Below are positions 39,782-63,575 of a stretch of DNA of 64,000 nt, in pieces (position 1 is the first letter of the stretch; each line of letters opens with the position of its first letter). Location of the stretch: assembly GCA_964057225.1 (NCBI GenBank), contig OZ059900.1, positions 10,664,001 through 10,728,000 on the forward strand. The letters are read 5' to 3'. Source of the stretch: Auanema rhodensis (lineage: Eukaryota; Animalia; Nematoda). The translations under genes and the position numbers were made by a program. The notes beneath the pieces are model-generated. The model searched no databases and had not been told where the DNA came from. It saw only the letters and a program-made list of their open reading frames with translations.

Positions 39782-41582
39782 ATGGAACTTTTTTCACATC
39801 CTTTTTTTCTGAAACTATTATTTGTTTCTTGCATTGCCGCATCTATCCGCGAAACAGTAAATGGTGATTGCTTTTCAACGTTATCAATTTTTTGTAAAGT
39901 TAAATTGTAATTTAGCTGAGAATTATTATGGATTACCATTAGGCATAATACATGATGATATATTTGGCATCTCTGCAGACGTATATATAGCTGACCCACA
40001 TACTATTGTTCTTGCTAATTACGAGCAAGACAAGCATATTGACGGTATTTGCATAACATTTTTCATATTTAATGAACAAGATCTATTAAAGAATTTTCGG
40101 ATGTATCGCTAATGCTGTGGAAGGGTGAACCTGATGAGAACACTCAAGTATATTATATAAATTGCATATTTTATTTGTAAACTATAACAGAAACGAATCT
40201 AATGTTTCTATGTTCTTTATTCTCTTCGTTTTTTGTGAGCAAAATTTCATATTCAGGGTCGAGACCAGGGTGTTCTGCTATTACAAACAGATTGGGATGT
40301 ACCAGAGCGCATTAGAAAGATTAAACGAAGGTACAATATTCATCAAAATAGTTATAATTTCTTCATTGATTTGAATTAAGCGTACCAAGTGCCTCATTAG
40401 AAAAGGTTAATTCCACACAACTTAACAACGTGAGTATATTTAACTTATGGTTTTTCACATATTTGTATTTAAAGGAGCCAGCAAGAGAAAAAAACCAAAA
40501 TAAAAAAATTGTTTTGAACCAAGGGAACAGTAAAAGTCAAGGCAATTGATTTAAATTTTCTTCTCAGCAAATAATCAATTCAGCTATTTCCAGAAAAAAA
40601 AATTCAAATAAAAAGAAAGATCATATATATAAAGCAAGTTTATAATTTTCCTTATCACTTTTTGGTATATTAATCTTACAAACTTAAGAAAACAAAGAGC
40701 ATTTCTTAACAAAACTTCAACGGAAATCAAACAGTTGAACGTATGTCGTGTGCAGAACAAACAAAAACAAATATCAGTTTAGAGAAAAAAAAACCATAAT
40801 GTTCATATGCCAGACGAACGCGCTCCTGCTCTAACTACACTTCGGCGAGAAGGTGAGCAAAGAAATGTTTTTGTTCCCGATAAGCATATACAATATTTAA
40901 CAAAGTTGTTTTATTTTAGGAAATCTCTCTCCTATTTTCATCACCCCTCTTGAGAAAAAGACAATTGTGTTACTAGTACCAACTGAAAACAAAATTGAAG
41001 ACTATAACTGGCTGGGAATTTGGGAAGATAATTCGCAGGTTTTATTTCTATTGTGGTCGCATTCCTCATTCATTAATTAAATTAACAGAAATTTTATCCT
41101 CATATAAATGTAACTGGCATTGAAACGCCTAATGAAGAAGAAATAGGCCAATTACAATCCAAAGCAGATATAACTGGAACTGTTAGAATTTTGAATTGCA
41201 ACACGATACTTGTTCAAAACTTCTATTTCAACCCTAAATTTAATGAAAGTAAGAAAGGTTCAAAAATATTAATAAAAAGTAAAAACTTGCAATAGAAATG
41301 CGATTTTATGTCGGAGTGGGAGAAGAGCCTACTATATCAGCAAATCTGCGCTGTCACATACTAGGAATTACGAAGTAAGTTTTTAATTGAGAATGAATAA
41401 AAAAAACTACATTTTACAGCTCACAGTACATTGAACAAGCCAATGGAACCGATTTACTCATTCTACTCCCAGATACTCTTCGTACATTTGATATTGACTT
41501 CATGTATCTTGTTGACGAACTAACAAGAAGAATTCAAGCTTTTATACAAATTCCCAATGTATTAGTTCCTCCATGTGATTGA
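39782..41582 (+). CDS. Secreted DM13-domain protein (two DM13-like repeats), multi-exon
   Basis: Signal-like MELFSHPFFLKLLFVSCIAA, then ENYYGLPLGIIHDDIFGISADVYIADPHTIVL, IEDYNWLGIW, ITGTVRILNCNTILVQNFYF, MRFYVGVG and LLPDTLRTFDIDF, ending IPNVLVPPCD*. Middle exons are less certain. Confidence 0.78.
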
Positions 41583-41873
41583 GAAAACAACTGTGATTAT
41601 TCATTATGTAATATTTTTCCCTCGATATAAATTGTTATTTTAAATTTACGAGAGATTGCATGCATAATGCACATAAAGACTTATCTGATAAAACGGGAAA
41701 TATCTATGTTTAGAATATTTAACATCTCAGCTTTTATTGATCTCTTTCAAATTGCAACATCAAATAACGACAACACGATGGTGAGAATTTGTTTCAATAG
41801 GTGTTCGTAAGACATAAGAAAACAGGGCAGACATCAATTAGAATTGAACAATTTTCTTTTACAATGATTACTT

Positions 41874-42270
41874 CTATTTTCTACCGCCTGGAATGAAATG
41901 GAAATTGTCCCCGCCTTGAGGTGATGCCATGTATTCAGCTAACGAAAGTCCCATTGAAGCTGGAATGAAAAAATAAATTATTTTCCATGATTCTTGCATA
42001 ATGAGCATGACCAATAGCATTTCAAATTTTGAAAAAAAAAACGTACGACTTCGCTTCGCTTTTAACATGACCATTCTATAAACTCTCGATAGCACAGGTT
42101 CAAGGTTTTCATATTCAGACTGAAAAAAAATTTTTTGAACTAAATTCTTTGACATAAAATGAAATAGTTATAGATCGAATCATATTGAAAATATTATTTA
42201 CTTCAGTCCAAGAATAAACGTTGACTAAGCACGCCAATAAAACGAGAGACATCAACAGCCGGTTCTGCAT
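41874..42270 (-). CDS. nlp-49: NLP-49 neuropeptide precursor (SEB-3 ligand), 3 exons, 75 aa
   Basis: Exons 42270-42202, 42119-42047 and 41959-41874 splice in frame (228 nt): MQNRLLMSLVLLACLVNVYSWTESEYENLEPVLSRVYRMVMLKAKR-SPSMGLSLAEYMASPQGGDNFHFIPGG-RK*. The mature peptide is nearly identical to the C. elegans NLP-49 peptide SPSMGLSLAEYMASPQGGDNFHFMPS-amide as I recall it. Confidence 0.92.
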
Positions 42271-42790
42271 GTTTCAAAATAAACGATTACCTGCAATATA
42301 GTAATGCAAATTTAAAAGTTGAATTCGAGATTGAATATTCTAGAAAAGAAGAGAAAAATTTGTAATTGAAAAAGAATTTTTATTTTGACAATCATATTTC
42401 CAGCTGGCTATTTATACTAAGACAGTCCACGTCATACTTCTAATAAAAACCATATGGGACCTTTGTATGTTAATATCCTTCTTGAAAGAAGAAATAATTC
42501 AATTGAATTTCTAGCTTTGATTAATTTGAGGATTACTAACCAAATAATGAGAATATTGTTTTTAGACGAAAATATGATCGGTTTTGAATACATTATAGTG
42601 ATATAGTTGAACTATTCTACTATCCCGTTTCAAAATTAACAACTTTAAAACCATGTCGATACTTTAATTTTGCATATCTCTAACTACATTTTTTCATATA
42701 CGGGGACAATATAGTAATGTAATGTTCATAACTACTTTTTACTCAAGCAATACAATAGTGTTCATAACCAAACAGACAAACACGAAATTC

Positions 42791-42819
42791 CTTTGGTTCA
42801 GGCTCAGCCTTTGATAACA
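42791..42819. other. Candidate programmed-DNA-elimination break / telomere-addition motif (SFE-like palindrome)
   Basis: CTTTGGTTC-AGGC-TCA-GCCT-TT-GAT-AACA: an AGGC-N3-GCCT palindrome centred at 42805, ~35 bp before the first satellite monomer. TCAGGC (42798-42803) is a 5/6 match to the nematode telomere repeat TTAGGC. Confidence 0.55.
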
Positions 42820-42849
42820 TTGAATTTTTCAAATACCGAAAATTGATGC

Positions 42850-45800
42850 ACATTGAAAAGTATAGTTCAAAATCAATACAAGGGTATTCAGAACATTTAT
42901 GCAACCTGAATAATGTGAACACTTATTAATATGTTTCTTTGTGTTTTTTTGAACTTGCATAATGCTTATGCATAGAAAGGTGCTATAGCACCGTGCTACG
43001 GCATGAACATTGAAAAGTATAGTTCAAAATCAATACAAGGGTATTCAGAAAATTTATGCAACCTGAATAGTGTGAACACTTATTAATATGTTTCTTTGTG
43101 TTTTTTTGAACTTGCATACGTTGTATCCTCTCAATACTTATGCATGGGAAGGCGGCACCGTGCTTGAGCACCGTGCTGTTTCTTTGTGTTTTTTGAACTT
43201 GCAGAATGCTTATGCATAGAAAGGTGCTATAGCACCGTGCTACGGCATGAACATTGAAAAGTATAGTTCAAAATCAATACAAGGGTATTCAGAACATTTA
43301 TGCAACCTGAATAATGTGAACACTTATTAATATGTTTCTTTGTGTTTTTTTGAACTTGCATACGTTGTATCCTCTCAATACTTATGCATGGGAAGGCGGC
43401 ACCGTGCTTGAGCACCGTGCTGTTTCTTTGTGTTTTTTGAACTTGCAGAATGCTTATGCATAGAAAGGTGCTATAGCACCGTGCTACGGCATGAACATTG
43501 AAAAGTATAGTTCAAAATCAATACAAGGGTATTCAGAATATTTATGCAACCTGAATAATGTGAACACTTATTAATATGTTTCTTTGTGTTTTTTTGAACT
43601 TGCATACGTTGTATCCTCTCAATACTTATGCATGGGAAGGCGGCACCGTGCTTGAGCACCGTGCTGTTTCTTTGTGTTTTTTGAACTTGCAGAATGCTTA
43701 TGCATAGAAAGGTGCTATAGCACCGTGCTACGGCATGAACATTGAAAAGCATAGTTCAAAATCAATACAAGGGTATTCAGAACATTTATGCAACCTGAAT
43801 AATGTGAACACTTATTAAAATATTTCTTTGTGTTTTTTTTGGAACTTGCATACATTGTATCCTTAGAATGCTTATGCATGGGAAGGTGGCACCGTGCTTG
43901 AGCACCGTGCTGTTTCTTTGTGTTTTTTGAACTTGCAGAATGCTTATGCATAGAAAGGTGCTATAGCACCGTGCTACGGCATGAACATTGAAAAGTATAG
44001 TTCAAAATCAATACAAGGGTATTCAGAACATTTATGCAACCTGAATAATGTGAACACTTATTAAAATATTTCTTTGTGTTTTTTTTGGAACTTGCATACA
44101 TTGTATCCTTAGAATGCTTATGCATGGGAAGGTGGCACCGTGCTACGGCTTGAACATTGAAAAGTATAGTTCAAAATCAATACAAGGGTATTCAGAACAT
44201 TTATGCAACCTGAATAATGTGAACACTTATTAATATGTTTCTTTGTGTTTTTTTGAACTTGCAGAATGCTTATGCATAGAAAGGTGCTATAGCACCGTGC
44301 TACGGCATGAACATTGAAAAGTATAGTTCAAAATCAATACAAGGGTATTCAGAAAATTTATGCAACCTGAATAGTGTGAACACTTATTAATATGTTTCTT
44401 TGTGTTTTTTTGAACTTGCATACGTTGTATCCTCTCAATACTTATGCATGGGAAGGCGGCACCGTGCTTGAGCACCGTGCTGTTTCTTTGTGTTTTTTGA
44501 ACTTGCAGAATGCTTATGCATAGAAAGGTGCTATAGCACCGTGCTACGGCATGAACATTGAAAAGTATAGTTCAAAATCAATACAAGGGTATTCAGAACA
44601 TTTATGCAACCTGAATAATGTGAACACTTATTAATATGTTTCTTTGTGTTTTTTTGAACTTGCATACGTTGTATCCTCTCAATACTTATGCATGGGAAGG
44701 CGGCACCGTGCTTGAGCACCGTGCTGTTTCTTTGTGTTTTTTGAACTTGCAGAATGCTTATGCATAGAAAGGTGCTATAGCACCGTGCTACGGCATGAAC
44801 ATTGAAAAGTATAGTTCAAAATCAATACAAGGGTATTCAGAATATTTATGCAACCTGAATAATGTGAACACTTATTAATATGTTTCTTTGTGTTTTTTTG
44901 AACTTGCATACGTTGTATCCTCTCAATACTTATGCATGGGAAGGCGGCACCGTGCTTGAGCACCGTGCTGTTTCTTTGTGTTTTTTGAACTTGCAGAATG
45001 CTTATGCATAGAAAGGTGCTATAGCACCGTGCTACGGCATGAACATTGAAAAGCATAGTTCAAAATCAATACAAGGGTATTCAGAATATTTATGCAACCT
45101 GAATAGTGTGAACACTTATTAATATGTTTCTTTGTGTTTTTTTGAACTTGCATACGTTGTATCCTCTCAATACTTATGCATGGGAAGGCGGCACCGTGCT
45201 TGAGCACCGTGCTGTTTCTTTGTGTTTTTTGAACTTGCAGAATGCTTATGCATAGAAAGGTGCTATAGCACCGTGCTACGGCATGAACATTGAAAAGTAT
45301 AGTTCAAAATCAATACAAGGGTATTCAGAACATTTATGCAACCTGAATAATGTGAACACTTATTAAAATATTTCTTTGTGTTTTTTTTGGAACTTGCATA
45401 CATTGTATCCTTAGAATGCTTATGCATGGGAAGGTGGCACCGTGCTACGGCTTGAACATTGAAAAGTATAGTTCAAAATCAATACAAGGGTATTCAGAAC
45501 ATTTATGCAACCTGAATAATGTGAACACTTATTAATATGTTTCTTTGTGTTTTTTTGAACTTGCAGAATGCTTATGCATAGAAAGGTGCTATAGCACCGT
45601 GCTACGGCATGAACATTGAAAAGTATAGTTCAAAATCAATACAAGGGTATTCAGAACATTTATGCAACCTGAATAATGTGAACACTTATTAATATGTTTC
45701 TTTGTGTTTTTTTGAACTTGCAGAATGCTTATGCATAGGGAGGTGCTATAGCACCGTGCTACGGCATGAACATTGAAAAGTATAGTTCAAAATCAATACA

Positions 45801-48800
45801 AGGGTATTCAGAACATTTATGCAACCTGAATAATGTGAACACTTATTAATATGTTTCTTTGTGTTTTTTTGAACTTGCAGAATGCTTATGCATAGGGAGG
45901 TGCTATAGCACCGTGCTACGGCATGAACATTGAAAAGTATAGTTCAAAATCAATACAAGGGTATTCAGAACATTTATGCAACCTGAATAATGTGAACACT
46001 TATTAATATGTTTCTTTGTGTTTTTTTGAACTTGCATACGTTGTATCCTCTCAATACTTATGCATGGGAAGGCGGCACCGTGCTTGAGCACCGTGCTGTT
46101 TCTTTGTGTTTTTTGAACTTGCAGAATGCTTATGCATAGAAAGGTGCTATAGCACCGTGCTACGGCATGAACATTGAAAAGTATAGTTCAAAATCAATAC
46201 AAGGGTATTCAGAACATTTATGCAACCTGAATAATGTGAACACTTATTAATATGTTTCTTTGTGTTTTTTTGAACTTGCATACGTTGTATCCTCTCAATA
46301 CTTATGCATGGGAAGGCGGCACCGTGCTTGAGCACCGTGCTGTTTCTTTGTGTTTTTTGAACTTGCAGAATGCTTATGCATAGAAAGGTGCTATAGCACC
46401 GTGCTACGGCATGAACATTGAAAAGTATAGTTCAAAATCAATACAAGGGTATTCAGAATATTTATGCAACCTGAATAATGTGAACACTTATTAATATGTT
46501 TCTTTGTGTTTTTTTGAACTTGCATACGTTGTATCCTCTCAATACTTATGCATGGGAAGGCGGCACCGTGCTTGAGCACCGTGCTGTTTCTTTGTGTTTT
46601 TTGAACTTGCAGAATGCTTATGCATAGAAAGGTGCTATAGCACCGTGCTACGGCATGAACATTGAAAAGCATAGTTCAAAATCAATACAAGGGTATTCAG
46701 AATATTTATGCAACCTGAATAGTGTGAACACTTATTAATATGTTTCTTTGTGTTTTTTTGAACTTGCATACGTTGTATCCTCTCAATACTTATGCATGGG
46801 AAGGCGGCACCGTGCTTGAGCACCGTGCTGTTTCTTTGTGTTTTTTGAACTTGCAGAATGCTTATGCATAGAAAGGTGCTATAGCACCGTGCTACGGCAT
46901 GAACATTGAAAAGTATAGTTCAAAATCAATACAAGGGTATTCAGAACATTTATGCAACCTGAATAATGTGAACACTTATTAAAATATTTCTTTGTGTTTT
47001 TTTTGGAACTTGCATACATTGTATCCTTAGAATGCTTATGCATGGGAAGGTGGCACCGTGCTACGGCTTGAACATTGAAAAGTATAGTTCAAAATCAATA
47101 CAAGGGTATTCAGAACATTTATGCAACCTGAATAATGTGAACAATTATTAATATGTTTCTTTGTGTTTTTTTGAACTTGCAGAATGCTTATGCATAGGGA
47201 GGTGCTATAGCACCGTGCTACGGCATGAACATTGAAAAGTATAGTACAAAATCAATACAAGGGTATTCAGAACATTTATGCAACCTGAATAATGTGAACA
47301 CTTATTAATATGTTTCTTTGTGTTTTTTTGAACTTGCAGAATGCTTATGCATAGGGAGGTGCTATAGCACCGTGCTACGGCATGAACATTGAAAAGTATA
47401 GTTCAAAATCAATACAAGGGTATTCAGAACATTTATGCAACCTGAATAATGTGAACACTTATTAAAATATTTCTTTGTGTTTTTTTTGGAACTTGCATAC
47501 ATTGTATCCTTAGAATGCTTATGCATGGGAAGGTGGCACCGTGCTACGGCTTGAACATTGAAAAGTATAGTTCAAAATCAATACAAGGGTATTCAGAACA
47601 TTTATGCAACCTGAATAATGTGAACACTTATTAATATGTTTCTTTGTGTTTTTTTGAACTTGCAGAATGCTTATGCATAGGGAGGTGCTATAGCACCGTG
47701 CTACGGCATGAACATTGAAAAGTATAGTTCAAAATCAATACAAGGGTATTCAGAACATTTATGCAACCTGAATAATGTGAACACTTATTAATATGTTTCT
47801 TTGTGTTTTTTTGAACTTGCAGAATGCTTATGCATAGGGAGGTGCTATAGCACCGTGCTACGGCATGAACATTGAAAAGTATAGTTCAAAATCAATACAA
47901 GGGTATTCAGAACATTTATGCAACCTGAATAATGTGAACACTTATTAATATGTTTCTTTGTGTTTTTTTGAACTTGCATACGTTGTATCCTCTCAATACT
48001 TATGCATGGGAAGGCGGCACCGTGCTTGAGCACCGTGCTGTTTCTTTGTGTTTTTTGAACTTGCAGAATGCTTATGCATAGAAAGGTGCTATAGCACCGT
48101 GCTACGGCATGAACATTGAAAAGTATAGTTCAAAATCAATACAAGGGTATTCAGAACATTTATGCAACCTGAATAATGTGAACACTTATTAATATGTTTC
48201 TTTGTGTTTTTTTGAACTTGCATACGTTGTATCCTCTCAATACTTATGCATGGGAAGGCGGCACCGTGCTTGAGCACCGTGCTGTTTCTTTGTGTTTTTT
48301 GAACTTGCAGAATGCTTATGCATAGAAAGGTGCTATAGCACCGTGCTACGGCATGAACATTGAAAAGTATAGTTCAAAATCAATACAAGGGTATTCAGAA
48401 TATTTATGCAACCTGAATAATGTGAACACTTATTAATATGTTTCTTTGTGTTTTTTTGAACTTGCATACGTTGTATCCTCTCAATACTTATGCATGGGAA
48501 GGCGGCACCGTGCTTGAGCACCGTGCTGTTTCTTTGTGTTTTTTGAACTTGCAGAATGCTTATGCATAGAAAGGTGCTATAGCACCGTGCTACGGCATGA
48601 ACATTGAAAAGTATAGTTCAAAATCAATACAAGGGTATTCAGAATATTTATGCAACCTGAATAGTGTGAACACTTATTAATATGTTTCTTTGTGTTTTTT
48701 TGAACTTGCATACGTTGTATCCTCTCAATACTTATGCATGGGAAGGCGGCACCGTGCTTGAGCACCGTGCTGTTTCTTTGTGTTTTTTGAACTTGCAGAA

Positions 48801-51800
48801 TGCTTATGCATAGAAAGGTGCTATAGCACCGTGCTACGGCATGAACATTGAAAAGTATAGTTCAAAATCAATACAAGGGTATTCAGAACATTTATGCAAC
48901 CTGAATAATGTGAACACTTATTAAAATATTTCTTTGTGTTTTTTTTGGAACTTGCATACATTGTATCCTTAGAATGCTTATGCATGGGAAGGTGGCACCG
49001 TGCTACGGCTTGAACATTGAAAAGTATAGTTCAAAATCAATACAAGGGTATTCAGAACATTTATGCAACCTGAATAATGTGAACACTTATTAATATGTTT
49101 CTTTGTGTTTTTTTGAACTTGCAGAATGCTTATGCATAGAAAGGTGCTATAGCACCGTGCTACGGCATGAACATTGAAAAGTATAGTTCAAAATCAATAC
49201 AAGGGTATTCAGAAAATTTATGCAACCTGAATAATGTGAACACTTATTAATATGTTTCTTTGTGTTTTTTTGAACTTGCAGAATGCTTATGCATAGGGAG
49301 GTGCTATAGCACCGTGCTACGGCATGAACATTGAAAAGTATAGTTCAAAATCAATACAAGGGTATTCAGAACATTTATGCAACCTGAATAATGTGAACAC
49401 TTATTAATATGTTTCTTTGTGTTTTTTTGAACTTGCAGAATGCTTATGCATAGAAAGGTGCTATAGCACCGTGCTACGGCATGAACATTGAAAAGTATAG
49501 TTCAAAATCAATACAAGGGTATTCAGAAAATTTATGCAACCTGAATAATGTGAACACTTATTAATATGTTTCTTTGTGTTTTTTTGAACTTGCAGAATGC
49601 TTATGCATAGAAAGGTGCTATAGCACCGTGCTACGGCATGAACATTGAAAAGTATAGTTCAAAATCAATACAAGGGTATTCAGAAAATTTATGCAACCTG
49701 AATAGTGTGAACACTTATTAATATGTTTCTTTGTGTTTTTTTGAACTTGCATACGTTGTATCCTCTCAATACTTATGCATGGGAAGGCGGCACCGTGCTT
49801 GAGCACCGTGCTGTTTCTTTGTGTTTTTTGAACTTGCAGAATGCTTATGCATAGAAAGGTGCTATAGCACCGTGCTACGGCATGAACATTGAAAAGTATA
49901 GTTCAAAATCAATACAAGGGTATTCAGAACATTTATGCAACCTGAATAATGTGAACACTTATTAAAATATTTCTTAGTGTTTTTTTTGGAACTTGCATAC
50001 ATTGTATCCTCGGAATGCTTATGCATGGGAAGGTGGCACCGTGCTACGGCTTGAACATTGAAAAGTATAGTTCAAAATCAATACAAGGGTATTCAGAACA
50101 TTTATGCAACCTGAATAATGTGAACACTTATTAATATGTTTCTTTGTGTTTTTTTGAACTTGCAGAATGCTTATGCATAGAAAGGTGCTATAGCACCGTG
50201 CTACGGCATGAACATTGAAAAGTATAGTTCAAAATCAATACAAGGGTATTCAGAACATTTATGCAACCTGAATAATGTGAACACTTATTAATATGTTTCT
50301 TTGTGTTTTTTTGAACTTGCAGAATGCTTATGCATAGAAAGGTGCTATAGCACCGTGCTACGGCATGAACATTGAAAAGTATAGTTCAAAATCAATACAA
50401 GGGTATTCAGAATATTTATGCAACCTGAATAGTGTGAACACTTATTAATATGTTTCTTTGTGTTTTTTTGAACTTGCATACGTTGTATCCTCTCAATACT
50501 TATGCATGGGAAGGCGGCACCGTGCTTGAGCACCGTGCTGTTTCTTTGTGTTTTTTGAACTTGCAGAATGCTTATGCATAGAAAGGTGCTATAGCACCGT
50601 GCTACGGCATGAACATTGAAAAGTATAGTTCAAAATCAATACAAGGGTATTCAGAACATTTATGCAACCTGAATAATGTGAACACTTATTAAAATATTTC
50701 TTTGTGTTTTTTTTGGAACTTGCATACATTGTATCCTTAGAATGCTTATGCATGGGAAGGTGGCACCGTGCTACGGCTTGAACATTGAAAAGTATAGTTC
50801 AAAATCAATACAAGGGTATTCAGAACATTTATGCAACCTGAATAATGTGAACACTTATTAATATGTTTCTTTGTGTTTTTTTGAACTTGCAGAATGCTTA
50901 TGCATAGAAAGGTGCTATAGCACCGTGCTACGGCATGAACATTGAAAAGTATAGTTCAAAATCAATACAAGGGTATTCAGAAAATTTATGCAACCTGAAT
51001 AATGTGAACACTTATTAATATGTTTCTTTGTGTTTTTTTGAACTTGCAGAATGCTTATGCATAGGGAGGTGCTATAGCACCGTGCTACGGCATGAACATT
51101 GAAAAGTATAGTTCAAAATCAATACAAGGGTATTCAGAACATTTATGCAACCTGAATAATGTGAACACTTATTAATATGTTTCTTTGTGTTTTTTTGAAC
51201 TTGCAGAATGCTTATGCATAGAAAGGTGCTATAGCACCGTGCTACGGCATGAACATTGAAAAGTATAGTTCAAAATCAATACAAGGGTATTCAGAAAATT
51301 TATGCAACCTGAATAATGTGAACACTTATTAATATGTTTCTTTGTGTTTTTTTGAACTTGCAGAATGCTTATGCATAGAAAGGTGCTATAGCACCGTGCT
51401 ACGGCATGAACATTGAAAAGTATAGTTCAAAATCAATACAAGGGTATTCAGAAAATTTATGCAACCTGAATAGTGTGAACACTTATTAATATGTTTCTTT
51501 GTGTTTTTTTGAACTTGCATACGTTGTATCCTCTCAATACTTATGCATGGGAAGGCGGCACCGTGCTTGAGCACCGTGCTGTTTCTTTGTGTTTTTTGAA
51601 CTTGCAGAATGCTTATGCATAGAAAGGTGCTATAGCACCGTGCTACGGCATGAACATTGAAAAGTATAGTTCAAAATCAATACAAGGGTATTCAGAACAT
51701 TTATGCAACCTGATTAATGTGAACACTTATTAATATGTTTCTTTGTGTTTTTTTGAACTTGCAGAATGCTTATGCATAGAAAGGTGCTATAGCACCGTGC

Positions 51801-54800
51801 TACGGCATGAACATTGAAAAGTATAGTTCAAAATCAATACAAGGGTATTCAGAACATTTATGCAACCTGAATAATGTGAACACTTATTAATATGTTTCTT
51901 TGTGTTTTTTTGAACTTGCAGAATGCTTATGCATAGGGAGGTGCTATAGCACCGTGCTACGGCATGAACATTGAAAAGTATAGTTCAAAATCAATACAAG
52001 GGTATTCAGAACATTTATGCAACCTGAATAATGTGAACACTTATTAATATGTTTCTTTGTGTTTTTTTGAACTTGCAGAATGCTTATGCATAGAAAGGTG
52101 CTATAGCACCGTGCTACGGCATGAACATTGAAAAGTATAGTTCAAAATCAATACAAGGGTATTCAGAACATTTATGCAACCTGAATAATGTGAACACTTA
52201 TTAATATGTTTCTTTGTGTTTTTTTGAACTTGCAGAATGCTTATGCATAGAAAGGTGCTATAGCACCGTGCTACGGCATGAACATTGAAAAGTATAGTTC
52301 AAAATCAATACAAGGGTATTCAGAAAATTTATGCAACCTGAATAGTGTGAACACTTATTAATATGTTTCTTTGTGTTTTTTTGAACTTGCATACGTTGTA
52401 TCCTCTCAATACTTATGCATGGGAAGGCGGCACCGTGCTTGAGCACCGTGCTGTTTCTTTGTGTTTTTTGAACTTGCAGAATGCTTATGCATAGAAAGGT
52501 GCTATAGCACCGTGCTACGGCATGAACATTGAAAAGTATAGTTCAAAATCAATACAAGGGTATTCAGAACATTTATGCAACCTGAATAATGTGAACACTT
52601 ATTAAAATATTTCTTTGTGTTTTTTTTGGAACTTGCATACATTGTATCCTTAGAATGCTTATGCATGGGAAGGTGGCACCGTGCTACGGCTTGAACATTG
52701 AAAAGTATAGTTCAAAATCAATACAAGGGTATTCAGAACATTTATGCAACCTGATTAATGTGAACACTTATTAATATGTTTCTTTGTGTTTTTTTGAACT
52801 TGCAGAATGCTTATGCATAGAAAGGTGCTATAGCACCGTGCTACGGCATGAACATTGAAAAGTATAGTTCAAAATCAATACAAGGGTATTCAGAACATTT
52901 ATGCAACCTGAATAATGTGAACACTTATTAATATGTTTCTTTGTGTTTTTTTGAACTTGCAGAATGCTTATGCATAGGGAGGTGCTATAGCACCGTGCTA
53001 CGGCATGAACATTGAAAAGTATAGTTCAAAATCAATACAAGGGTATTCAGAACATTTATGCAACCTGAATAATGTGAACACTTATTAATATGTTTCTTTG
53101 TGTTTTTTTGAACTTGCAGAATGCTTATGCATAGGGAGGTGCTATAGCACCGTGCTACGGCATGAACATTGAAAAGTATAGTTCAAAATCAATACAAGGG
53201 TATTCAGAACATTTATGCAACCTGAATAATGTGAACACTTATTAATATGTTTCTTTGTGTTTTTTTGAACTTGCAGAATGCTTATGCATAGGGAGGTGCT
53301 ATAGCACCGTGCTACGGCATGAACATTGAAAAGTATAGTTCAAAATCAATACAAGGGTATTCAGAACATTTATGCAACCTGAATAATGTGAACACTTATT
53401 AATATGTTTCTCTGTGTTTTTTTTTGAACTTGCAGAATGCTTATGCATAGGGAGGTGCTATAGCACCGTGCTACGGCATGAACATTGAAAAGTATAGTTC
53501 AAAATCAATACAAGGGTATTCAGAACATTTATGCAACCTGAATAATGTGAACACTTATTAATATGTTTCTTTGTGTTTTTTTGAACTTGCAGAATGCTTA
53601 TGCATAGAAAGGTGCTATAGCACCGTGCTACGGCATGAACATTGAAAAGTATAGTTCAAAATCAATACAAGGGTATTCAGAAAATTTATGCAACCTGAAT
53701 AGTGTGAACACTTATTAATATGTTTCTTTGTGTTTTTTTGAACTTGCATACGTTGTATCCTCTCAATACTTATGCATGGGAAGGCGGCACCGTGCTTGAG
53801 CACCGTGCTGTTTCTTTGTGTTTTTTGAACTTGCAGAATGCTTATGCATAGAAAGGTGCTATAGCACCGTGCTACGGCATGAACATTGAAAAGTATAGTT
53901 CAAAATCAATACAAGGGTATTCAGAACATTTATGCAACCTGAATAATGTGAACACTTATTAATATGTTTCTTTGTGTTTTTTTGAACTTGCATACGTTGT
54001 ATCCTCTCAATACTTATGCATGGGAAGGCGGCACCGTGCTTGAGCACCGTGCTGTTTCTTTGTGTTTTTTGAACTTGCAGAATGCTTATGCATAGAAAGG
54101 TGCTATAGCACCGTGCTACGGCATGAACATTGAAAAGTATAGTTCAAAATCAATACAAGGGTATTCAGAACATTTATGCAACCTGAATAATGTGAACACT
54201 TATTAATATGTTTCTTTGTGTTTTTTTGAACTTGCATACGTTGTATCCTCTCAATACTTATGCATGGGAAGGCGGCACCGTGCTTGAGCACCGTGCTGTT
54301 TCTTTGTGTTTTTTGAACTTGCAGAATGCTTATGCATAGAAAGGTGCTATAGCACCGTGCTACGGCATGAACATTGAAAAGTATAGTTCAAAATCAATAC
54401 AAGGGTATTCAGAACATTTATGCAACCTGAATAATGTGAACACTTATTAATATGTTTCTTTGTGTTTTTTTGAACTTGCAGAATGCTTATGCATAGGGAG
54501 GTGCTATAGCACCGTGCTACGGCATGAACATTGAAAAGTATAGTTCAAAATCAATACAAGGGTATTCAGAACATTTATGCAACCTGAATAATGTGAACAC
54601 TTATTAATATGTTTCTTTGTGTTTTTTTGAACTTGCAGAATGCTTATGCATAGGGAGGTGCTATAGCACCGTGCTACGGCATGAACATTGAAAAGTATAG
54701 TTCAAAATCAATACAAGGGTATTCAGAACATTTATGCAACCTGAATAATGTGAACACTTATTAATATGTTTCTTTGTGTTTTTTTGAACTTGCAGAATGC

Positions 54801-57800
54801 TTATGCATAGGGAGGTGCTATAGCACCGTGCTACGGCATGAACATTGAAAAGTATAGTTCAAAATCAATACAAGGGTATTCAGAACATTTATGCAACCTG
54901 AATAATGTGAACACTTATTAATATGTTTCTCTGTGTTTTTTTTTGAACTTGCAAAATGCTTATGCATAGGGAGGTGCTATAGCACCGTGCTACGGCATGA
55001 ACATTGAAAAGTATAGTTCAAAATCAATACAAGGGTATTCAGAACATTTATGCAACCTGAATAATGTGAACACTTATTAATATGTTTCTTTGTGTTTTTT
55101 TGAACTTGCAGAATGCTTATGCATAGAAAGGTGCTATAGCACCGTGCTACGGCATGAACATTGAAAAGTATAGTTCAAAATCAATACAAGGGTATTCAGA
55201 AAATTTATGCAACCTGAATAGTGTGAACACTTATTAATATGTTTCTTTGTGTTTTTTTGAACTTGCATACGTTGTATCCTCTCAATACTTATACATGGGA
55301 AGGCGGCACCGTGCTTGAGCACCGTGCTGTTTCTTTGTGTTTTTTGAACTTGCAGAATGCTTATGCATAGAAAGGTGCTATAGCACCGTGCTACGGCATG
55401 AACATTGAAAAGTATAGTTCAAAATCAATACAAGGGTATTCAGAACATTTATGCAACCTGAATAATGTGAACACTTATTAATATGTTTCTTTGTGTTTTT
55501 TTGAACTTGCATACGTTGTATCCTCTCAATACTTATGCATGGGAAGGCGGCACCGTGCTTGAGCACCGTGCTGTTTCTTTGTGTTTTTTGAACTTGCAGA
55601 ATGCTTATGCATAGAAAGGTGCTATAGCACCGTGCTACGGCATGAACATTGAAAAGTATAGTTCAAAATCAATACAAGGGTATTCAGAATATTTATGCAA
55701 CCTGAATAATGTGAACACTTATTAATATGTTTCTTTGTGTTTTTTTGAACTTGCATACGTTGTATCCTCTCAATACTTATGCATGGGAAGGCGGCACCGT
55801 GCTTGAGCACCGTGCTGTTTCTTTGTGTTTTTTGAACTTGCAGAATGCTTATGCATAGAAAGGTGCTATAGCACCGTGCTACGGCATGAACATTGAAAAG
55901 TATAGTTCAAAATCAATACAAGGGTATTCAGAATATTTATGCAACCTGAATAATGTGAACACTTATTAAAATATTTCTTTGTGTTTTTTTTGGAACTTGC
56001 ATACATTGTATCCTTAGAATGCTTATGCATGGGAAGGTGGCACCGTGCTACGGCTTGAACATTGAAAAGTATAGTTCAAAATCAATACAAGGGTATTCAG
56101 AACATTTATGCAACCTGAATAATGTGAACACTTATTAATATGTTTCTTTGTGTTTTTTTGAACTTGCAGAATGCTTATGCATAGGGAGGTGCTATAGCAC
56201 CGTGCTACGGCATGAACATTGAAAAGTATAGTTCAAAATCAATACAAGGGTATTCAGAACATTTATGCAACCTGAATAATGTGAACACTTATTAATATGT
56301 TTCTTTGTGTTTTTTTGAACTTGCAGAATGCTTATGCATAGGGAGGTGCTATAGCACCGTGCTACGGCATGAACATTGAAAAGTATAGTTCAAAATCAAT
56401 ACAAGGGTATTCAGAACATTTATGCAACCTGAATAATGTGAACACTTATTAATATGTTTCTTTGTGTTTTTTTGAACTTGCAGAATGCTTATGCATAGGG
56501 AGGTGCTATAGCACCGTGCTACGGCATGAACATTGAAAAGTATAGTTCAAAATCAATACAAGGGTATTCAGAACATTTATGCGACCTGAATAATGTGAAC
56601 ACTTATTAATATGTTTCTCTGTGTTTTTTTTTGAACTTGCAGAATGCTTATGCATAGGGAGGTGCTATAGCACCGTGCTACGGCATGAACATTGAAAAGT
56701 ATAGTTCAAAATCAATACAAGGGTATTCAGAACATTTATGCAACCTGAATAATGTGAACACTTATTAATATGTTTCTCTGTGTTTTTTTTTGAACTTGCA
56801 GAATGCTTCTGCATAGAAAGGTGCTATAGCACCGTGCTACGGCATGAACATTGAAAAGTATAGTTCAAAATCAATACAAGGGTATTCAGAACATTTATGC
56901 AACCTGAATAATGTGAACACTTATTAATATGTTTCTTTGTGTTTTTTTGAACTTGCAGAATGCTTATGCATAGAAAGGTGCTATAGCACCGTGCTACGGC
57001 ATGAACATTGAAAAGTATAGTTCAAAATCAATACAAGGGTATTCAGAACATTTATGCAACCTGAATAATGTGAACACTTATTAATATGTTTCTTTGTGTT
57101 TTTTTGAACTTGCAGAATGCTTATGCATAGGGAGGTGCTATAGCACCGTGCTACGGCATGAACATTGAAAAGTATAGTTCAAAATCAATACAAGGGTATT
57201 CAGAACATTTATGCAACCTGAATAATGTGAACACTTATTAATATGTTTCTTTGTGTTTTTTTGAACTTGCAGAATGCTTATGCATAGGGAGGTGCTATAG
57301 CACCGTGCTACGGCATGAACATTGAAAAGTATAGTTCAAAATCAATACAAGGGTATTCAGAACATTTATGCAACCTGAATAATGTGAACACTTATTAATA
57401 TGTTTCTTTGTGTTTTTTTGAACTTGCAGAATGCTTATGCATAGGGAGGTGCTATAGCACCGTGCTACGGCATGAACATTGAAAAGTATAGTTCAAAATC
57501 AATACAAGGGTATTCAGAACATTTATGCGACCTGAATAATGTGAACACTTATTAATATGTTTCTCTGTGTTTTTTTTTGAACTTGCAGAATGCTTATGCA
57601 TAGGGAGGTGCTATAGCACCGTGCTACGGCATGAACATTGAAAAGTATAGTTCAAAATCAATACAAGGGTATTCAGAACATTTATGCAACCTGAATAATG
57701 TGAACACTTATTAATATGTTTCTCTGTGTTTTTTTTTGAACTTGCAGAATGCTTCTGCATAGAAAGGTGCTATAGCACCGTGCTACGGCATGAACATTGA

Positions 57801-60800
57801 AAAGTATAGTTCAAAATCAATACAAGGGTATTCAGAACATTTATGCAACCTGAATAATGTGAACACTTATTAATATGTTTCTTTGTGTTTTTTTGAACTT
57901 GCAGAATGCTTATGCATAGAAAGGTGCTATAGCACCGTGCTACGGCATGAACATTGAAAAGTATAGTTCAAAATCAATACAAGGGTATTCAGAACATTTA
58001 TGCAACCTGAATAATGTGAACACTTATTAATATGTTTCTTTGTGTTTTTTTGAACTTGCAGAATGCTTATGCATAGAAAGGTGCTATAGCACCGTGCTAC
58101 GGCATGAACATTGAAAAGTATAGTTCAAAATCAATACAAGGGTATTCAGAACATTTATGCAACCTGAATAATGTGAACACTTATTAATATGTTTCTTAGT
58201 GTTTTTTTGAACTTGCAGAATGCTTATGCATAGAAAGGTGCTATAGCACCGTGCTACGGCATGAACATTGAAAAGTATAGTTCAAAATCAATACAAGGGT
58301 ATTCAGAACATTTATGCAACCTGAATAATGTGAACACTTATTAATATGTTTCTTTGTGTTTTTTTGAACTTGCAGAATGCTTATGCATAGGGAGGTGCTA
58401 TAGCACCGTGCTACGGCATGAACATTGAAAAGTATAGTTCAAAATCAATACAAGGGTATTCAGAACATTTATGCAACCTGAATAATGTGAACACTTATTA
58501 ATATGTTTCTTTGTGTTTTTTTGAACTTGCAGAATGCTTATGCATAGGGAGGTGCTATAGCACCGTGCTACGGCATGAACATTGAAAAGTATAGTTCAAA
58601 ATCAATACAAGGGTATTCAGAACATTTATGCGACCTGAATAATGTGAACACTTATTAATATGTTTCTCTGTGTTTTTTTTTGAACTTGCAGAATGCTTAT
58701 GCATAGGGAGGTGCTATAGCACCGTGCTACGGCATGAACATTGAAAAGTATAGTTCAAAATCAATACAAGGGTATTCAGAACATTTATGCAACCTGAATA
58801 ATGTGAACACTTATTAATATGTTTCTCTGTGTTTTTTTTTGAACTTGCAGAATGCTTCTGCATAGAAAGGTGCTATAGCACCGTGCTACGGCATGAACAT
58901 TGAAAAGTATAGTTCAAAATCAATACAAGGGTATTCAGAACATTTATGCAACCTGAATAATGTGAACACTTATTAATATGTTTCTTTGTGTTTTTTTGAA
59001 CTTGCAGAATGCTTATGCATAGAAAGGTGCTATAGCACCGTGCTACGGCATGAACATTGAAAAGTATAGTTCAAAATCAATACAAGGGTATTCAGAACAT
59101 TTATGCAACCTGAATAATGTGAACACTTATTAATATGTTTCTTTGTGTTTTTTTGAACTTGCAGAATGCTTATGCATAGAAAGGTGCTATAGCACCGTGC
59201 TACGGCATGAACATTGAAAAGTATAGTTCAAAATCAATACAAGGGTATTCAGAACATTTATGCAACCTGAATAATGTGAACACTTATTAATATGTTTCTT
59301 TGTGTTTTTTTGAACTTGCAGAATGCTTATGCATAGGGAGGTGCTATAGCACCGTGCTACGGCATGAACATTGAAAAGTATAGTTCAAAATCAATACAAG
59401 GGTATTCAGAACATTTATGCAACCTGAATAATGTGAACACTTATTAATATGTTTCTCTGTGTTTTTTTTTGAACTTGCAGAATGCTTCTGCATAGAAAGG
59501 TGCTATAGCACCGTGCTACGGCATGAACATTGAAAAGTATAGTTCAAAATCAATACAAGGGTATTCAGAACATTTATGCAACCTGAATAATGTGAACACT
59601 TATTAATATGTTTCTTTGTGTTTTTTTGAACTTGCAGAATGCTTATGCATAGAAAGGTGCTATAGCACCGTGCTACGGCATGAACATTGAAAAGTATAGT
59701 TCAAAATCAATACAAGGGTATTCAGAACATTTATGCAACCTGAATAATGTGAACACTTATTAATATGTTTCTTTGTGTTTTTTTGAACTTGCAGAATGCT
59801 TATGCATAGAAAGGTGCTATAGCACCGTGCTACGGCATGAACATTGAAAAGTATAGTTCAAAATCAATACAAGGGTATTCAGAACATTTATGCAACCTGA
59901 ATAATGTGAACACTTATTAATATGTTTCTTTGTGTTTTTTTGAACTTGCAGAATGCTTATGCATAGAAAGGTGCTATAGCACCGTGCTACGGCATGAACA
60001 TTGAAAAGTATAGTTCAAAATCAATACAAGGGTATTCAGAACATTTATGCAACCTGAATAATGTGAACACTTATTAATATGTTTCTTTGTGTTTTTTTGA
60101 ACTTGCAGAATGCTTATGCATAGAAAGGTGCTATAGCACCGTGCTACGGCATGAACATTGAAAAGTATAGTTCAAAATCAATACAAGGGTATTCAGAACA
60201 TTTATGCAACCTGAATAATGTGAACACTTATTAATATGTTTCTTTGTGTTTTTTTGAACTTGCATACGTTGTATCCTCTCAATACTTATGCATGGGAAGG
60301 CGGCACCGTGCTTGAGCACCGTGCTGTTTCTTTGTGTTTTTTGAACTTGCAGAATGCTTATGCATAGAAAGGTGCTATAGCACCGTGCTACGGCATGAAC
60401 ATTGAAAAGTATAGTTCAAAATCAATACAAGGGTATTCAGAACATTTATGCAACCTGAATAATGTGAACACTTATTAATATGTTTCTTTGTGTTTTTTTG
60501 AACTTGCAGAATGCTTATGCATAGAAAGGTGCTATAGCACCGTGCTACGGCATGAACATTGAAAAGTATAGTTCAAAATCAATACAAGGGTATTCAGAAC
60601 ATTTATGCAACCTGAATAATGTGAACACTTATTAATATGTTTCTTTGTGTTTTTTTGAACTTGCAGAATGCTTATGCATAGAAAGGTGCTATAGCACCGA
60701 GCTACGGCATGAACATTGAAAAGTATAGTTCAAAATCAATACAAGGGTATTCAGAACATTTATGCAACCTGAATAATGTGAACACTTATTAATATGTTTC

Positions 60801-61025
60801 TTTGTGTTTTTTTGAATTTGCATACGTTGTATCCTCTCAATACTTATGCATGGGAAGGCGGCACCGTGCTTGAGCACCGTGCTGTTTCTTTGTGTTTTTT
60901 GAACTTGCAGAATGCTTATGCATAGGAAAGTGCTATAGCACCGTGCTATGGCATGAACATTGAAAAGTATAGTTCAGAATCAATACAATAGTATTTAGAG
61001 AATTTATGCAAAATTATGTGAACGT
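42850..61025 (+). repeat. Homogeneous tandem satellite array, roughly 100 monomers of 157 bp (A), 244 bp (B) and 169 bp (C)
   Basis: Periods measured from landmarks: 58241 to 58398 = 157; 42983 to 43227 = 244; 43966 to 44135 = 169. Copies are near-identical and share the core GGTGCTATAGCACCGTGCTACGGCATGAACATTGAAAAG. Confidence 0.98.
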
Positions 61026-61029
61026 ATGT

Positions 61030-61972
61030 CGTAGCATGGTGCTCTAGCACGTTGCTCTAGCGCGGTGCTATAGCACGTTTCCATGCATAAGTATTATGAG
61101 GATACAACGTATGCAAGTTCAAAAAAAACACAAAGAAACATTTTAAAAAGTGTTCACGTAATTCATGTTGTATAAGTTCTCTAAATACCCTTGTATTGAT
61201 TTTTAACTATACTTTTCAATGTTCAAGCTGTAGCATGGTGCTCTAGCACGGTGCCATACCACCTTCCCATGCATAAGCTCGATCACTAAAATACTCGGTA
61301 TATCTTCTAATAAAGAACTTGACTTGTTCATGATTCCGATAAAGATAACAAACAATCAAATCAGTTATAGAAAAGAAATTTACTCAGTCAACTGCATTCA
61401 ATATTCGACCCTATTGGGTAGTCAGCCTCTATACTTTTACCACTCAAACTTATAATGCGAGAAATTATAAATACTAAACTATCAAGGGACCAACCTATTA
61501 AGTCAAACAGTATCAAACAATGGGAAGAACACTTAACTCAAATCAACCACAATCAGTTGACCATGAACAGATATTTTCCATTCGTGGACCATGAAACGTA
61601 ATTATATGTTTTTGCTGACGCAATCAAGCCATGGCCGCTTGTTTATACTTTCAAACAAAACAGAAGGTTCAAGCCCGTTCGGTCAACAAGTGATAAACAC
61701 GTTCTGACCGTGTGACTTATGTCTATAGGTTTATCGGAATCATGAACGAGTCAAGTTCTTTATTAGAGGATATACCGAGTATTTTAGTGATCGAGCTTAT
61801 GCTTGGGAAGGTGGTATGGCACCGTGCGCGAGCACTGTGCTACGGCATGAACATTGAAAAGTATAGTTCAAAATCAATACAAGGGTATTTAGAGAATTTA
61901 TACAACATGAATTACGTGAACACTTTTCAAAATGTTTCTTTGTGTTTTTTTTGAAATTGCATACATTGTATC
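61030..61972. repeat. Large inverted repeat (arms ~61030-61343 and 61730-~61972, 386-bp spacer)
   Basis: gcataagctcgatcactaaaatactcggtatatcttctaataaagaacttgacttgttcatgattccgataaa (61271-61343) is mirrored by tttatcggaatcatgaacgagtc...gatcgagcttatgc (61730-61802). The flanking satellite monomers point in opposite directions. Confidence 0.92.
61282..61670 (+). mobile_element. Decayed BEL/Pao LTR-retrotransposon pol fragment (RT end / Peptidase_A17-RNase H region)
   Basis: Manual translation across frameshifts and stops: ITKILGISSNKELDLFMIPI / KRNLLSQLHSIFDPIG*SASILLPLKLIMREII..LSRDQPI...KQWEEHL / RYFPF...*LYVFADA / QAMAACLYF. These follow the KxLG, KR.LS....FDP.G and L.VFADAS..A.AAC.Y motifs of Pao elements in the correct order. 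Confidence 0.85.
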
Positions 61973-62819
61973 CTTACAATCCTTATGAATGGGAAGGTGT
62001 TACCTCACTCTGCTATTGCACCGCTCTAGAGCGACGTGCTAGAGCACCATGCTACAGCACCATGCTACGGCATGAACATTGTAAAGTATAGTTCAAGATC
62101 GATACAATAGTATTTAGAGAAATTATGCAGCATGAATTACGTGAATACTTTTTAGAATGTTTCTTTGTGTTTTTTTTGAACTTGCGTACGTTGTATCCTC
62201 ACAATACTTATGCATGGAACCGTGCTACAGCACCGCGCTAGAGCAACGTGCTAGAGCACCATGCTACGGCATGAACATTGAAAAGTATAGTTCAAAATCA
62301 ATACAGGGATATTTAGAGAACTTATACAACATGAATTAGGTGAATACTTATTAAAATATTTCTTTGTGTTTTTTTCAACTTGCATACATTGTATACTTAC
62401 AATCCTTATGAATGGGAAGGTGTTACCTCACTCTGCTATAGCACCGCGCTAGAGCAACGTGCTAGAGCACCATGCTACGGCATGAACAGTGAAAAGTATA
62501 GTTCAAAATCAATACAAGGGTATTTAGAGAACTTATACAACATGAATTACGTGAACACTTTTTAAAATGTTTCTTTGTGTTTTTTTTGAGCTTGCATACG
62601 TTGTATCCTCATAATACTTATGCATGGAAACGTGCTATAGCACCGCGCTAGGGCAACGTGCTAGAGCACCATGCTACGGCATGAACATTGTAAAGTATAG
62701 TTCAAGATCGATACAACGATATTAAGAGAACTTATGCAGCATGAATTACGTGAATACTTCTTAAAATGTTTCTCTGTGTTTTTTTTTGAACTTGCATACA
62801 TTGTATCCTTACAATCGTA
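61796..62819 (+). repeat. Diverged (older) monomers of the same satellite family, ~5 copies of ~185-210 bp
   Basis: Same GAACATTGAAAAGTATAGTTCAAAATCAATACAAGGG core with many substitutions and the variant palindromic block GCACCGCGCTAGAGCAACGTGCTAGAGCACC. Confidence 0.93.
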
Positions 62820-62880
62820 TAAAAAATAAATAAAATGATAGTTTGAATGGAGCATCCGTTGTGATAAAAAACCAAATTAA

Positions 62881-62962
62881 CGATCAGGATGAGATTCGAA
62901 CTCACGCGGGGAAACCCCAATGGATTAGCAGTCCATCGCCTTAACCACTCGGCCACCTGATC
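62881..62962 (-). tRNA. tRNA-Ser (anticodon GCT), copy 1
   Basis: GATCAGGTGGCCGAGTGGTTAAGGCGATGGACTGCTAATCCATTGGGGTTTCCCCGCGTGAGTTCGAATCTCATCCTGATCG: 82 nt, A and B boxes, long variable arm, intact stems, downstream T-run. Confidence 0.97.
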
Positions 62963-63128
62963 ACAGGGTTTTTCCAAGAATACTCTTACTTAAACAAAGA
63001 AATTATTGTGAGAATAAATAACGTCAACAAATGAATAATAAAGTCTTTCTATTAAATCAGGTGGCTTGGCTTTATTTAGAAATTGATAGTTTGAATGGAG
63101 CATCCGTTGTCATAAAAAACAAAATTAA

Positions 63129-63210
63129 CGATCAGGATGAGATTCGAACTCACGCGGGGAAACCCCAATGGATTAGCAGTCCATCGCCTTAACCACTCGG
63201 CCACCTGATC
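63129..63210 (-). tRNA. tRNA-Ser (anticodon GCT), copy 2
   Basis: Identical to copy 1. Confidence 0.97.
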
Positions 63211-63376
63211 ACAGGGTTTTTCCAAGAATACTCTTACTTAAACAAAGAAATTATTGTGAGAATAAATAATTTCAACAAATAAATAATAAATTCTTCCTAT
63301 TAAATCGGGTGGCTTGGCTTTATTTAGAAAATGATAGTTTGAATGGAGCATCCGTTGTCATAAAAAACAAAATTAA

Positions 63377-63458
63377 CGATCAGGATGAGATTCGAACTCA
63401 CGCGGGGAAACCCCAATGGATTAGCAGTCCATCGCCTTAACCACTCGGCCACCTGATC
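63377..63458 (-). tRNA. tRNA-Ser (anticodon GCT), copy 3
   Basis: Identical to copy 1. Confidence 0.97.
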
Positions 63459-63575
63459 ACAGGGTTTTTCCAAGAATACTCTTACTTAAACAAAGAAATT
63501 ATTGTGACAACAAATATCGTCAGCAAACAAATAAGAAAGTCTTCCTATTGAATCAGTTGTCTTGGCTTTATTTAG

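Follow-up and report, generated by a model that had tools for sequence, protein, structure and literature searches.

The closest described system is that of Auanema rhodense itself, in which, according to the accessible text of a preprint, ~61% of a 180.9-Mb assembly is eliminated from the soma, the elimination taking place at the 12-cell stage (Gonzalez de la Rosa et al., bioRxiv 10.64898/2026.08.27.747507). The same text gives 28 internal sites of telomere addition, and at each of them there is an overlapping 29-base palindrome, the Sequence For Elimination (SFE), that has a variable central base and four conserved bases on each side, with telomere addition between positions 14 and 15; on the X chromosome, two sites bracket a small central eliminated region, and five identical motifs are spaced 3.5 kb apart. 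In Oscheius tipulae, telomerase primes on GGC/GCC, and non-complementary conserved positions have been noted in the SFE (bioRxiv 10.1101/2022.08.19.504554; PMC13060919).

Here, we analyse a 64-kb stretch of the germline genome of A. rhodense (C8:10,664,001-10,728,000, contig OZ059900.1; hereafter the window, to which all positions given without a contig name refer). The 29-mer at 42791-42819 (~C8:10,706,805) is, with high confidence, a functional SFE on the A. rhodense X chromosome. It is a member of an already known elimination system, published in 2026, and the preliminary description of this DNA, in which the 29-mer had been put forward as a candidate break site, was correct in that call. 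Judging from the text of the preprint, the site very probably belongs to the 28 that have been published. Thus, SFE sites are findable by a reader using the sequence alone.

The palindrome and its relatives in the genome

The sequence of 42791-42819 is CTTTGGTTCAGGCT-C-AGCCTTTGATAACA, that is, two 14-base arms separated by a central C at 42805. The AGGC-N3-GCCT palindrome claimed to be centred on this position is present as AGGCTCAGCCT at 42800-42810, with TTGAT following at 42811-42815, and the core at 42801-42809, GGCTCAGCC, is identical to that of the published chr5 site. The printed coordinate of the latter, chr5:16,502,174, corresponds to the T of GGCT in GTTTAGTTCAGGCT-C-AGCCAAAACAGAAA on contig C6, and the two sites have the 14-mer GTTCAGGCTCAGCC in common. 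The two arms are unequally preserved. The retained-side arm (42791-42804, plus strand; 16.6 bits) ends in the GGCT telomere seed and matches all conserved positions of the arm consensus TTTnGyTyAGGCT, whereas the eliminated-side arm (42806-42819, plus strand; 8.3 bits) combines an intact AGCC core with a degenerate flank and is palindromic with the left arm at 7 of the 14 positions. The preliminary description had the right half fitting fully, which is the reverse of what the arm scores indicate. Nor do the flanking ATC/GAT that it gave for such sites appear in the consensus of the recovered sites, approximately TTTnGyTyAGGCT-N-AGCCTrArCnAAA; the GGC-N3-GCC core that it also gave does occur at the 42805 site and in O. 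tipulae, but the core conserved in this genome is GGCT-N-AGCC.

Within the window, AGGC-N3-GCCT and GGC-N3-GCC each occur once, at the site centred on 42805, so that the former is indeed as solitary as it had appeared by eye; telomere repeats are absent from the 64 kb searched, as expected of the germline sequence. The site marks the transition from genes to repeats, with an nlp-49 orthologue on the left and the first satellite monomer ~35-40 bp to the right, in agreement with the gene/satellite boundary recognized earlier; the satellite, retroelement debris and tandem tRNAs reported on the right also match the surroundings. The nlp-49 orthologue, already named as the last gene to the left of the break, is encoded on the minus strand, and its first two coding exons (41874-42270) are supported by open reading frames and by a peptide string that also occurs in the Caenorhabditis elegans nlp-49 paper (PMC6158228). 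The peptide exon spans 41874-42155, and the ATG of the signal-peptide exon is located at 42270, ~535 bp from 42805. The distance from the start codon of nlp-49 to the new telomere upstream of it is consequently only ~535 bp, a detail which may be new, and the somatic regulatory region of the gene on that side is very short.

The 11-mer on its own is no more than chance would provide: AGGC-N3-GCCT is expected 0.14 times per window, is matched once or more in 13 of 100 shuffles and is found at 256 sites genome-wide versus 285 for the reversed control. The full 29-mer, by contrast, is specific, and its significance comes from the longer arm rather than from the 11-mer. The 14-mer GTTCAGGCTNAGCC has eight exact sites in 181 Mb, against ~0.9 expected from our own base-composition estimate, and the other seven fall where the four block boundaries per autosome are expected (C1, for instance, has one on the plus strand at 10.909 Mb and one on the minus strand at 13.336 Mb); the looser pattern TNNGNNNAGGCTNAGCC yields 49 sites genome-wide versus 4 for the control. 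A 29-column matrix, which is our own and not the published one, was built from 20 other sites of this kind with 42791-42819 left out; it assigns 28.5 bits to the latter, the leave-one-out range of the 20 matrix sites being 22.1-36.4 bits. This matrix was run over 264 kb, consisting of the window and every second 10-kb block to its right, and gave scores above 12 bits at only two places, namely, 42791-42819 and a motif on the opposite strand at C8:10,913,780 (29.5 bits); the next-best unrelated match reaches 11.4 bits.

On the eliminated side of 42805, there is no second SFE-like motif within 21 kb, and such a lack of a back-up copy is not stated in the accessible text of the A. rhodense preprint. 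Several autosomal SFE sites, unlike the one at 42805, occur as twins 100-700 bp apart. A genome-wide family search with a local 24-mer (up to 3 mismatches) recovered only the 42791-42819 site itself, and a strict O. tipulae-style full palindrome, rebuilt from the text of the paper, had no matches in this genome; the half-site TTTGGT-N3-GGC-N3-GCC, with four genome matches, was uninformative. Separately, the monomer of a 199-bp satellite at C1:13,836,828-13,849,975 (>60 repeats) includes GTTCAGGCTGAGCA, in which an SFE arm is perfect but the far core is broken (GCA for GCC); given its position to the right of the 13.336-Mb site on C1, this satellite may be located in retained DNA.

The telomere junction and contig depth

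The read evidence comes from Logan contigs of four public runs (X4, X5, X8 and X9), representing three studies, which were compared with 40300-43000; these are assembled contigs rather than raw reads, and one of the studies may be the source of the assembly itself. In all four runs, the contig of the unique left flank follows the reference as far as 42811, with two mismatches, before continuing with 10-11 loose letters, AGGCTTAGGC(T). TTAGGC repeats added after GGCT at 42804 would supply TAGGCTT as the next seven letters, which differs from the CAGCCTT of the reference at exactly two places, and the loose letters continue in phase. Accordingly, the contigs read GGCT and then about three TTAGGC repeats, where they stop. 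The telomere addition point is thus observed at 42804..42805 on the plus strand, with genomic sequence extending no further than 42804 and non-genomic sequence beginning at 42805, and the 5' to 3' polarity of the G-rich strand is towards the new end, in keeping with a telomere. The preliminary description had predicted a somatic end at ~42803 with TTAGGC following GGC, and the turn to telomeric sequence after GGCT at 42804 bears this out in each of the four runs.

The uninterrupted germline junction is missing from the same contigs. Depth arithmetic on the bin 42757-42847, in which the depth equals the share of the left contig plus two bases of the satellite contig in each run, shows that 42812-42845 is covered by no contig in any of the four runs. 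Because contigs drop rare variants, this gap indicates that the germline junction is a minority form rather than absent. Among the contigs of the four runs, none that is capped by GCCTAA starts on the right side of 42805; the missing healed end on the eliminated side is, however, no evidence against transient healing.

The satellite next to the junction is under-represented. Relative to the unique flank, the word depth of the satellite contig, with contig depth being a rough measure, is 1.4-3.4x in X4, X5 and X8 and 12-15x in X9, the last of which is close to the coverage ratio of 29 to 236 given in the A. rhodense preprint. For ~100 satellite copies, a depth of 1.4-15x would place the array in a few per cent to ~15% of genomes, an estimate that is rough and is counted as supportive only; the depth is 7- to 70-fold below the expectation from copy number. 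Collectively, the junction, the gap and the depth indicate that the gene side on the left is kept and the right side eliminated. The suggestion that the DNA on the right is germline-restricted agrees with the junction gap and the low satellite depth, but the loss probably covers only ~207 kb, to C8:10,913,780.

The putative eliminated segment of the X chromosome

To the right of the site, a 157-bp satellite with 244/314/473-bp higher-order variants extends over 42838-60822 on the plus strand; TRF delimits the array at 42932-60822, the satellite contigs match from 42846, and the start is at ~42838. With up to 2 mismatches allowed, a satellite 32-mer is present 104 times genome-wide, and all 100 among the matches listed lie in C8:10,707,000-10,725,875; the copy number was taken from this pattern count, as BLAST of the monomer against the genome skips common words and returns diverged copies only. 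The satellite is private to this single locus, runs on one strand and displays nested periods of 157, 244, 314, 473 and 488. Each 157-bp monomer also holds short inverted repeats that are rich in GC, of the form GCACCGTGCTA/TAGCACGGTGC. Beyond the main array, diverged copies with periods of 199-410 bp, detected by TRF and BLAST, occupy 61819-62816 (plus strand) and are succeeded at 62832-63575 (minus strand) by the start of 248-bp tRNA-Ser(GCT) tandem arrays, recognized by TRF and by tRNA genes, with three tandem tRNA-Ser(GCT) genes at 62880-63459. The 13 blocks of 10 kb sampled further to the right contribute another 143 copies, bringing the count to at least 146 in the sampled parts. Two full blocks (10.868-10.878 and 10.888-10.898 Mb), along with a further array reaching ~10.911 Mb, suggest a single array of more than 40 kb. 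The tRNA-Ser(GCT) genes look intact, and their 248-bp arrays are found on both strands across C8:10.748-10.911 Mb, all of them inside the putative eliminated interval.

The published FISH probes AT-1, XR-1, XT-1 and XT-2 are absent from the window and from the sampled blocks of the interval, and therefore the 157-bp satellite is none of these four repeats; it may correspond to the minor 'XC' repeat named in the A. rhodense preprint. The eliminated central X segment would consist mostly of a private 157-bp satellite and hundreds of tRNA-Ser genes.

The second strong motif, at C8:10,913,766-10,913,794 (centre 10,913,780), is in the opposite orientation, with its good arm, AATTTGTTCAGGCT, facing right. 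The retained-side arm and half-core are perfect, and the core on the eliminated, left side is mutated (GCCT instead of GGCT). The motif sits 2.5 kb past the end of a long tRNA-Ser array, and to its right unique DNA is succeeded by an array of 18S-5.8S-28S rDNA whose period is ~6.57 kb. On the strength of its sequence and orientation, the motif at C8:10,913,780 probably delimits, on the right, a ~207-kb eliminated central X segment, and the pair that it forms with the 42805 site fits the small central eliminated X region of the preprint. The X-linked rDNA array (C8:10.988-11.118 Mb) begins ~75 kb to the right of this putative partner, on the presumably retained side. Contig C8 is 26.93 Mb long, has telomere repeats near its right end and contains, at 14.217-14.235 Mb, six copies of the motif at intervals of 3,495 bp, which fit the five published X motifs at 3.5 kb and thereby identify C8 as the X chromosome.

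Alternative readings, mechanism and known systems

Might the palindrome lie beside the satellite by chance, with no break at all? The 11-mer, being unenriched by any of the three counts given above, would allow it, and, according to the A. rhodense preprint, four motifs in retained DNA score highly but have no telomere added at them (bioRxiv 10.64898/2026.08.27.747507). Coincidence is nevertheless extremely improbable, since telomere repeats join exactly at the centre of the motif in four runs from three studies, its matrix score is typical of real sites, and its position falls exactly on the gene/satellite boundary. The junction itself could be read differently, as an interstitial telomere insertion or a strain polymorphism, with every cell of the sequenced worms carrying (TTAGGC)n between nlp-49 and the satellite. 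That the same junction recurs in three studies, in the phase and at the position which the published mechanism predicts, makes this very unlikely, as do the 7- to 70-fold deficit of the satellite and the uninterrupted germline junction in the long-read reference, even though the contigs end after about three repeats, with the sequence beyond not visible, and several interstitial telomere arrays exist on C8 near 26.3-26.9 Mb.

It is also conceivable that the break is healed on both sides and that both are kept, the site serving only to fragment the X and the satellite side surviving as the end of another somatic chromosome. Precedents of a sort are available: two X-derived somatic chromosomes retain large tandem-repeat blocks, according to the accessible text of the preprint (bioRxiv 10.64898/2026.08.27.747507), and O. 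tipulae transiently heals both ends (bioRxiv 10.1101/2022.08.19.504554; PMC13060919). Yet no GCCTAA-capped contig is seen on the right side, a retained array of 104 copies would require a depth far above that of the satellite, the XR-1 probe for retained repeats matches neither the window nor the sampled interval, and a strong motif in the opposite orientation 207 kb away brackets the interval; there is, accordingly, next to no likelihood that both sides persist.

For the preferred reading, namely, breakage at an SFE with loss of the right side, we take the break machinery and the timing from the literature. A break factor would recognize the palindrome, and pre-somatic cells of the early embryo would cut its centre, producing a double-strand break. 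The broken end would then be resected, and the 3' end finishing in GGCT would pair with the telomerase template, whereupon TTAGGC repeats would be added. The gene side on the left, ending with nlp-49, would become the right end of one X-derived somatic chromosome, whereas the right side, with its 18-kb 157-bp satellite, tRNA-Ser arrays and retroelements, would be lost, over a length that we infer to be probably ~207 kb, to C8:10,913,780. The acentric or unprotected segment would disappear in micronucleus-like bodies from the 12-cell stage. With the junction described here, independent public data confirm one of the two breaks by which the A. rhodense X is divided into two somatic chromosomes.

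The inequality of the arms extends beyond this site. The retained-side arm outscores the eliminated-side arm in 16 of 18 sites on C1, C3, C5, C6, C7 and C8 (Wilcoxon p = 0.00014), where the retained side was deduced from the order of sites along the chromosomes, the search patterns needed one good arm, irrespective of its side, and the sites recovered are fewer than all 28. Position 6 is G in all 18 retained arms versus 12 of the 18 eliminated arms. The asymmetry of the retained arm is not stated in the accessible text of the A. rhodense preprint and may be new. Considered alongside the poor eliminated arm at 42805 and the mutated GCCT core in the putative partner, it prompts the tentative and rather doubtful suggestion that the SFE is functionally asymmetric, with selection acting on the retained arm and the GGCT core only, such that a half-site could suffice for cutting and healing. 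If this were the case, the site would not be recognized by a simple symmetric dimer, and the arms on the eliminated side would be free to decay. A better-conserved retained arm bears on how the breakage machinery reads the site.

Among the systems known from other nematodes, the one of Ascaris is alike in its somatic breakage, de novo TTAGGC telomeres and satellite loss, but differs in that the breaks occur anywhere within 3-6-kb regions and without a sequence motif (PMC13370393). The SFEs of Caenorhabditis (C. auriculariae and C. monodelphis, as well as C. parvicauda) come closer, with precise addition sites marked by motifs, internal breaks that fragment chromosomes and satellites common in the eliminated DNA; their motifs are, however, bipartite or non-palindromic, located upstream of the addition site and with no resemblance in sequence to the O. 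tipulae type (PMC13370393). Like the site at 42805, the O. tipulae SFE is a degenerate palindrome of 29 bp in which a 3-bp spacer separates GGC at positions 11-13 from GCC at 17-19 (bioRxiv 10.1101/2022.08.19.504554; PMC13060919). The T-rich outer arm with G6 and T7 is likewise shared, positions 1-7 of the O. tipulae consensus being TTTAGGT. The two systems differ in that O. tipulae cuts chromosome ends only and loses 0.6% of its genome, whereas the cut at 42805 is internal and splits the X chromosome. With the SFEs of A. rhodense, finally, the site shares the genome itself, the GGCT-N-AGCC core, the AT-rich flanks, the addition point and the location at a gene/repeat boundary, and nothing essential differs.
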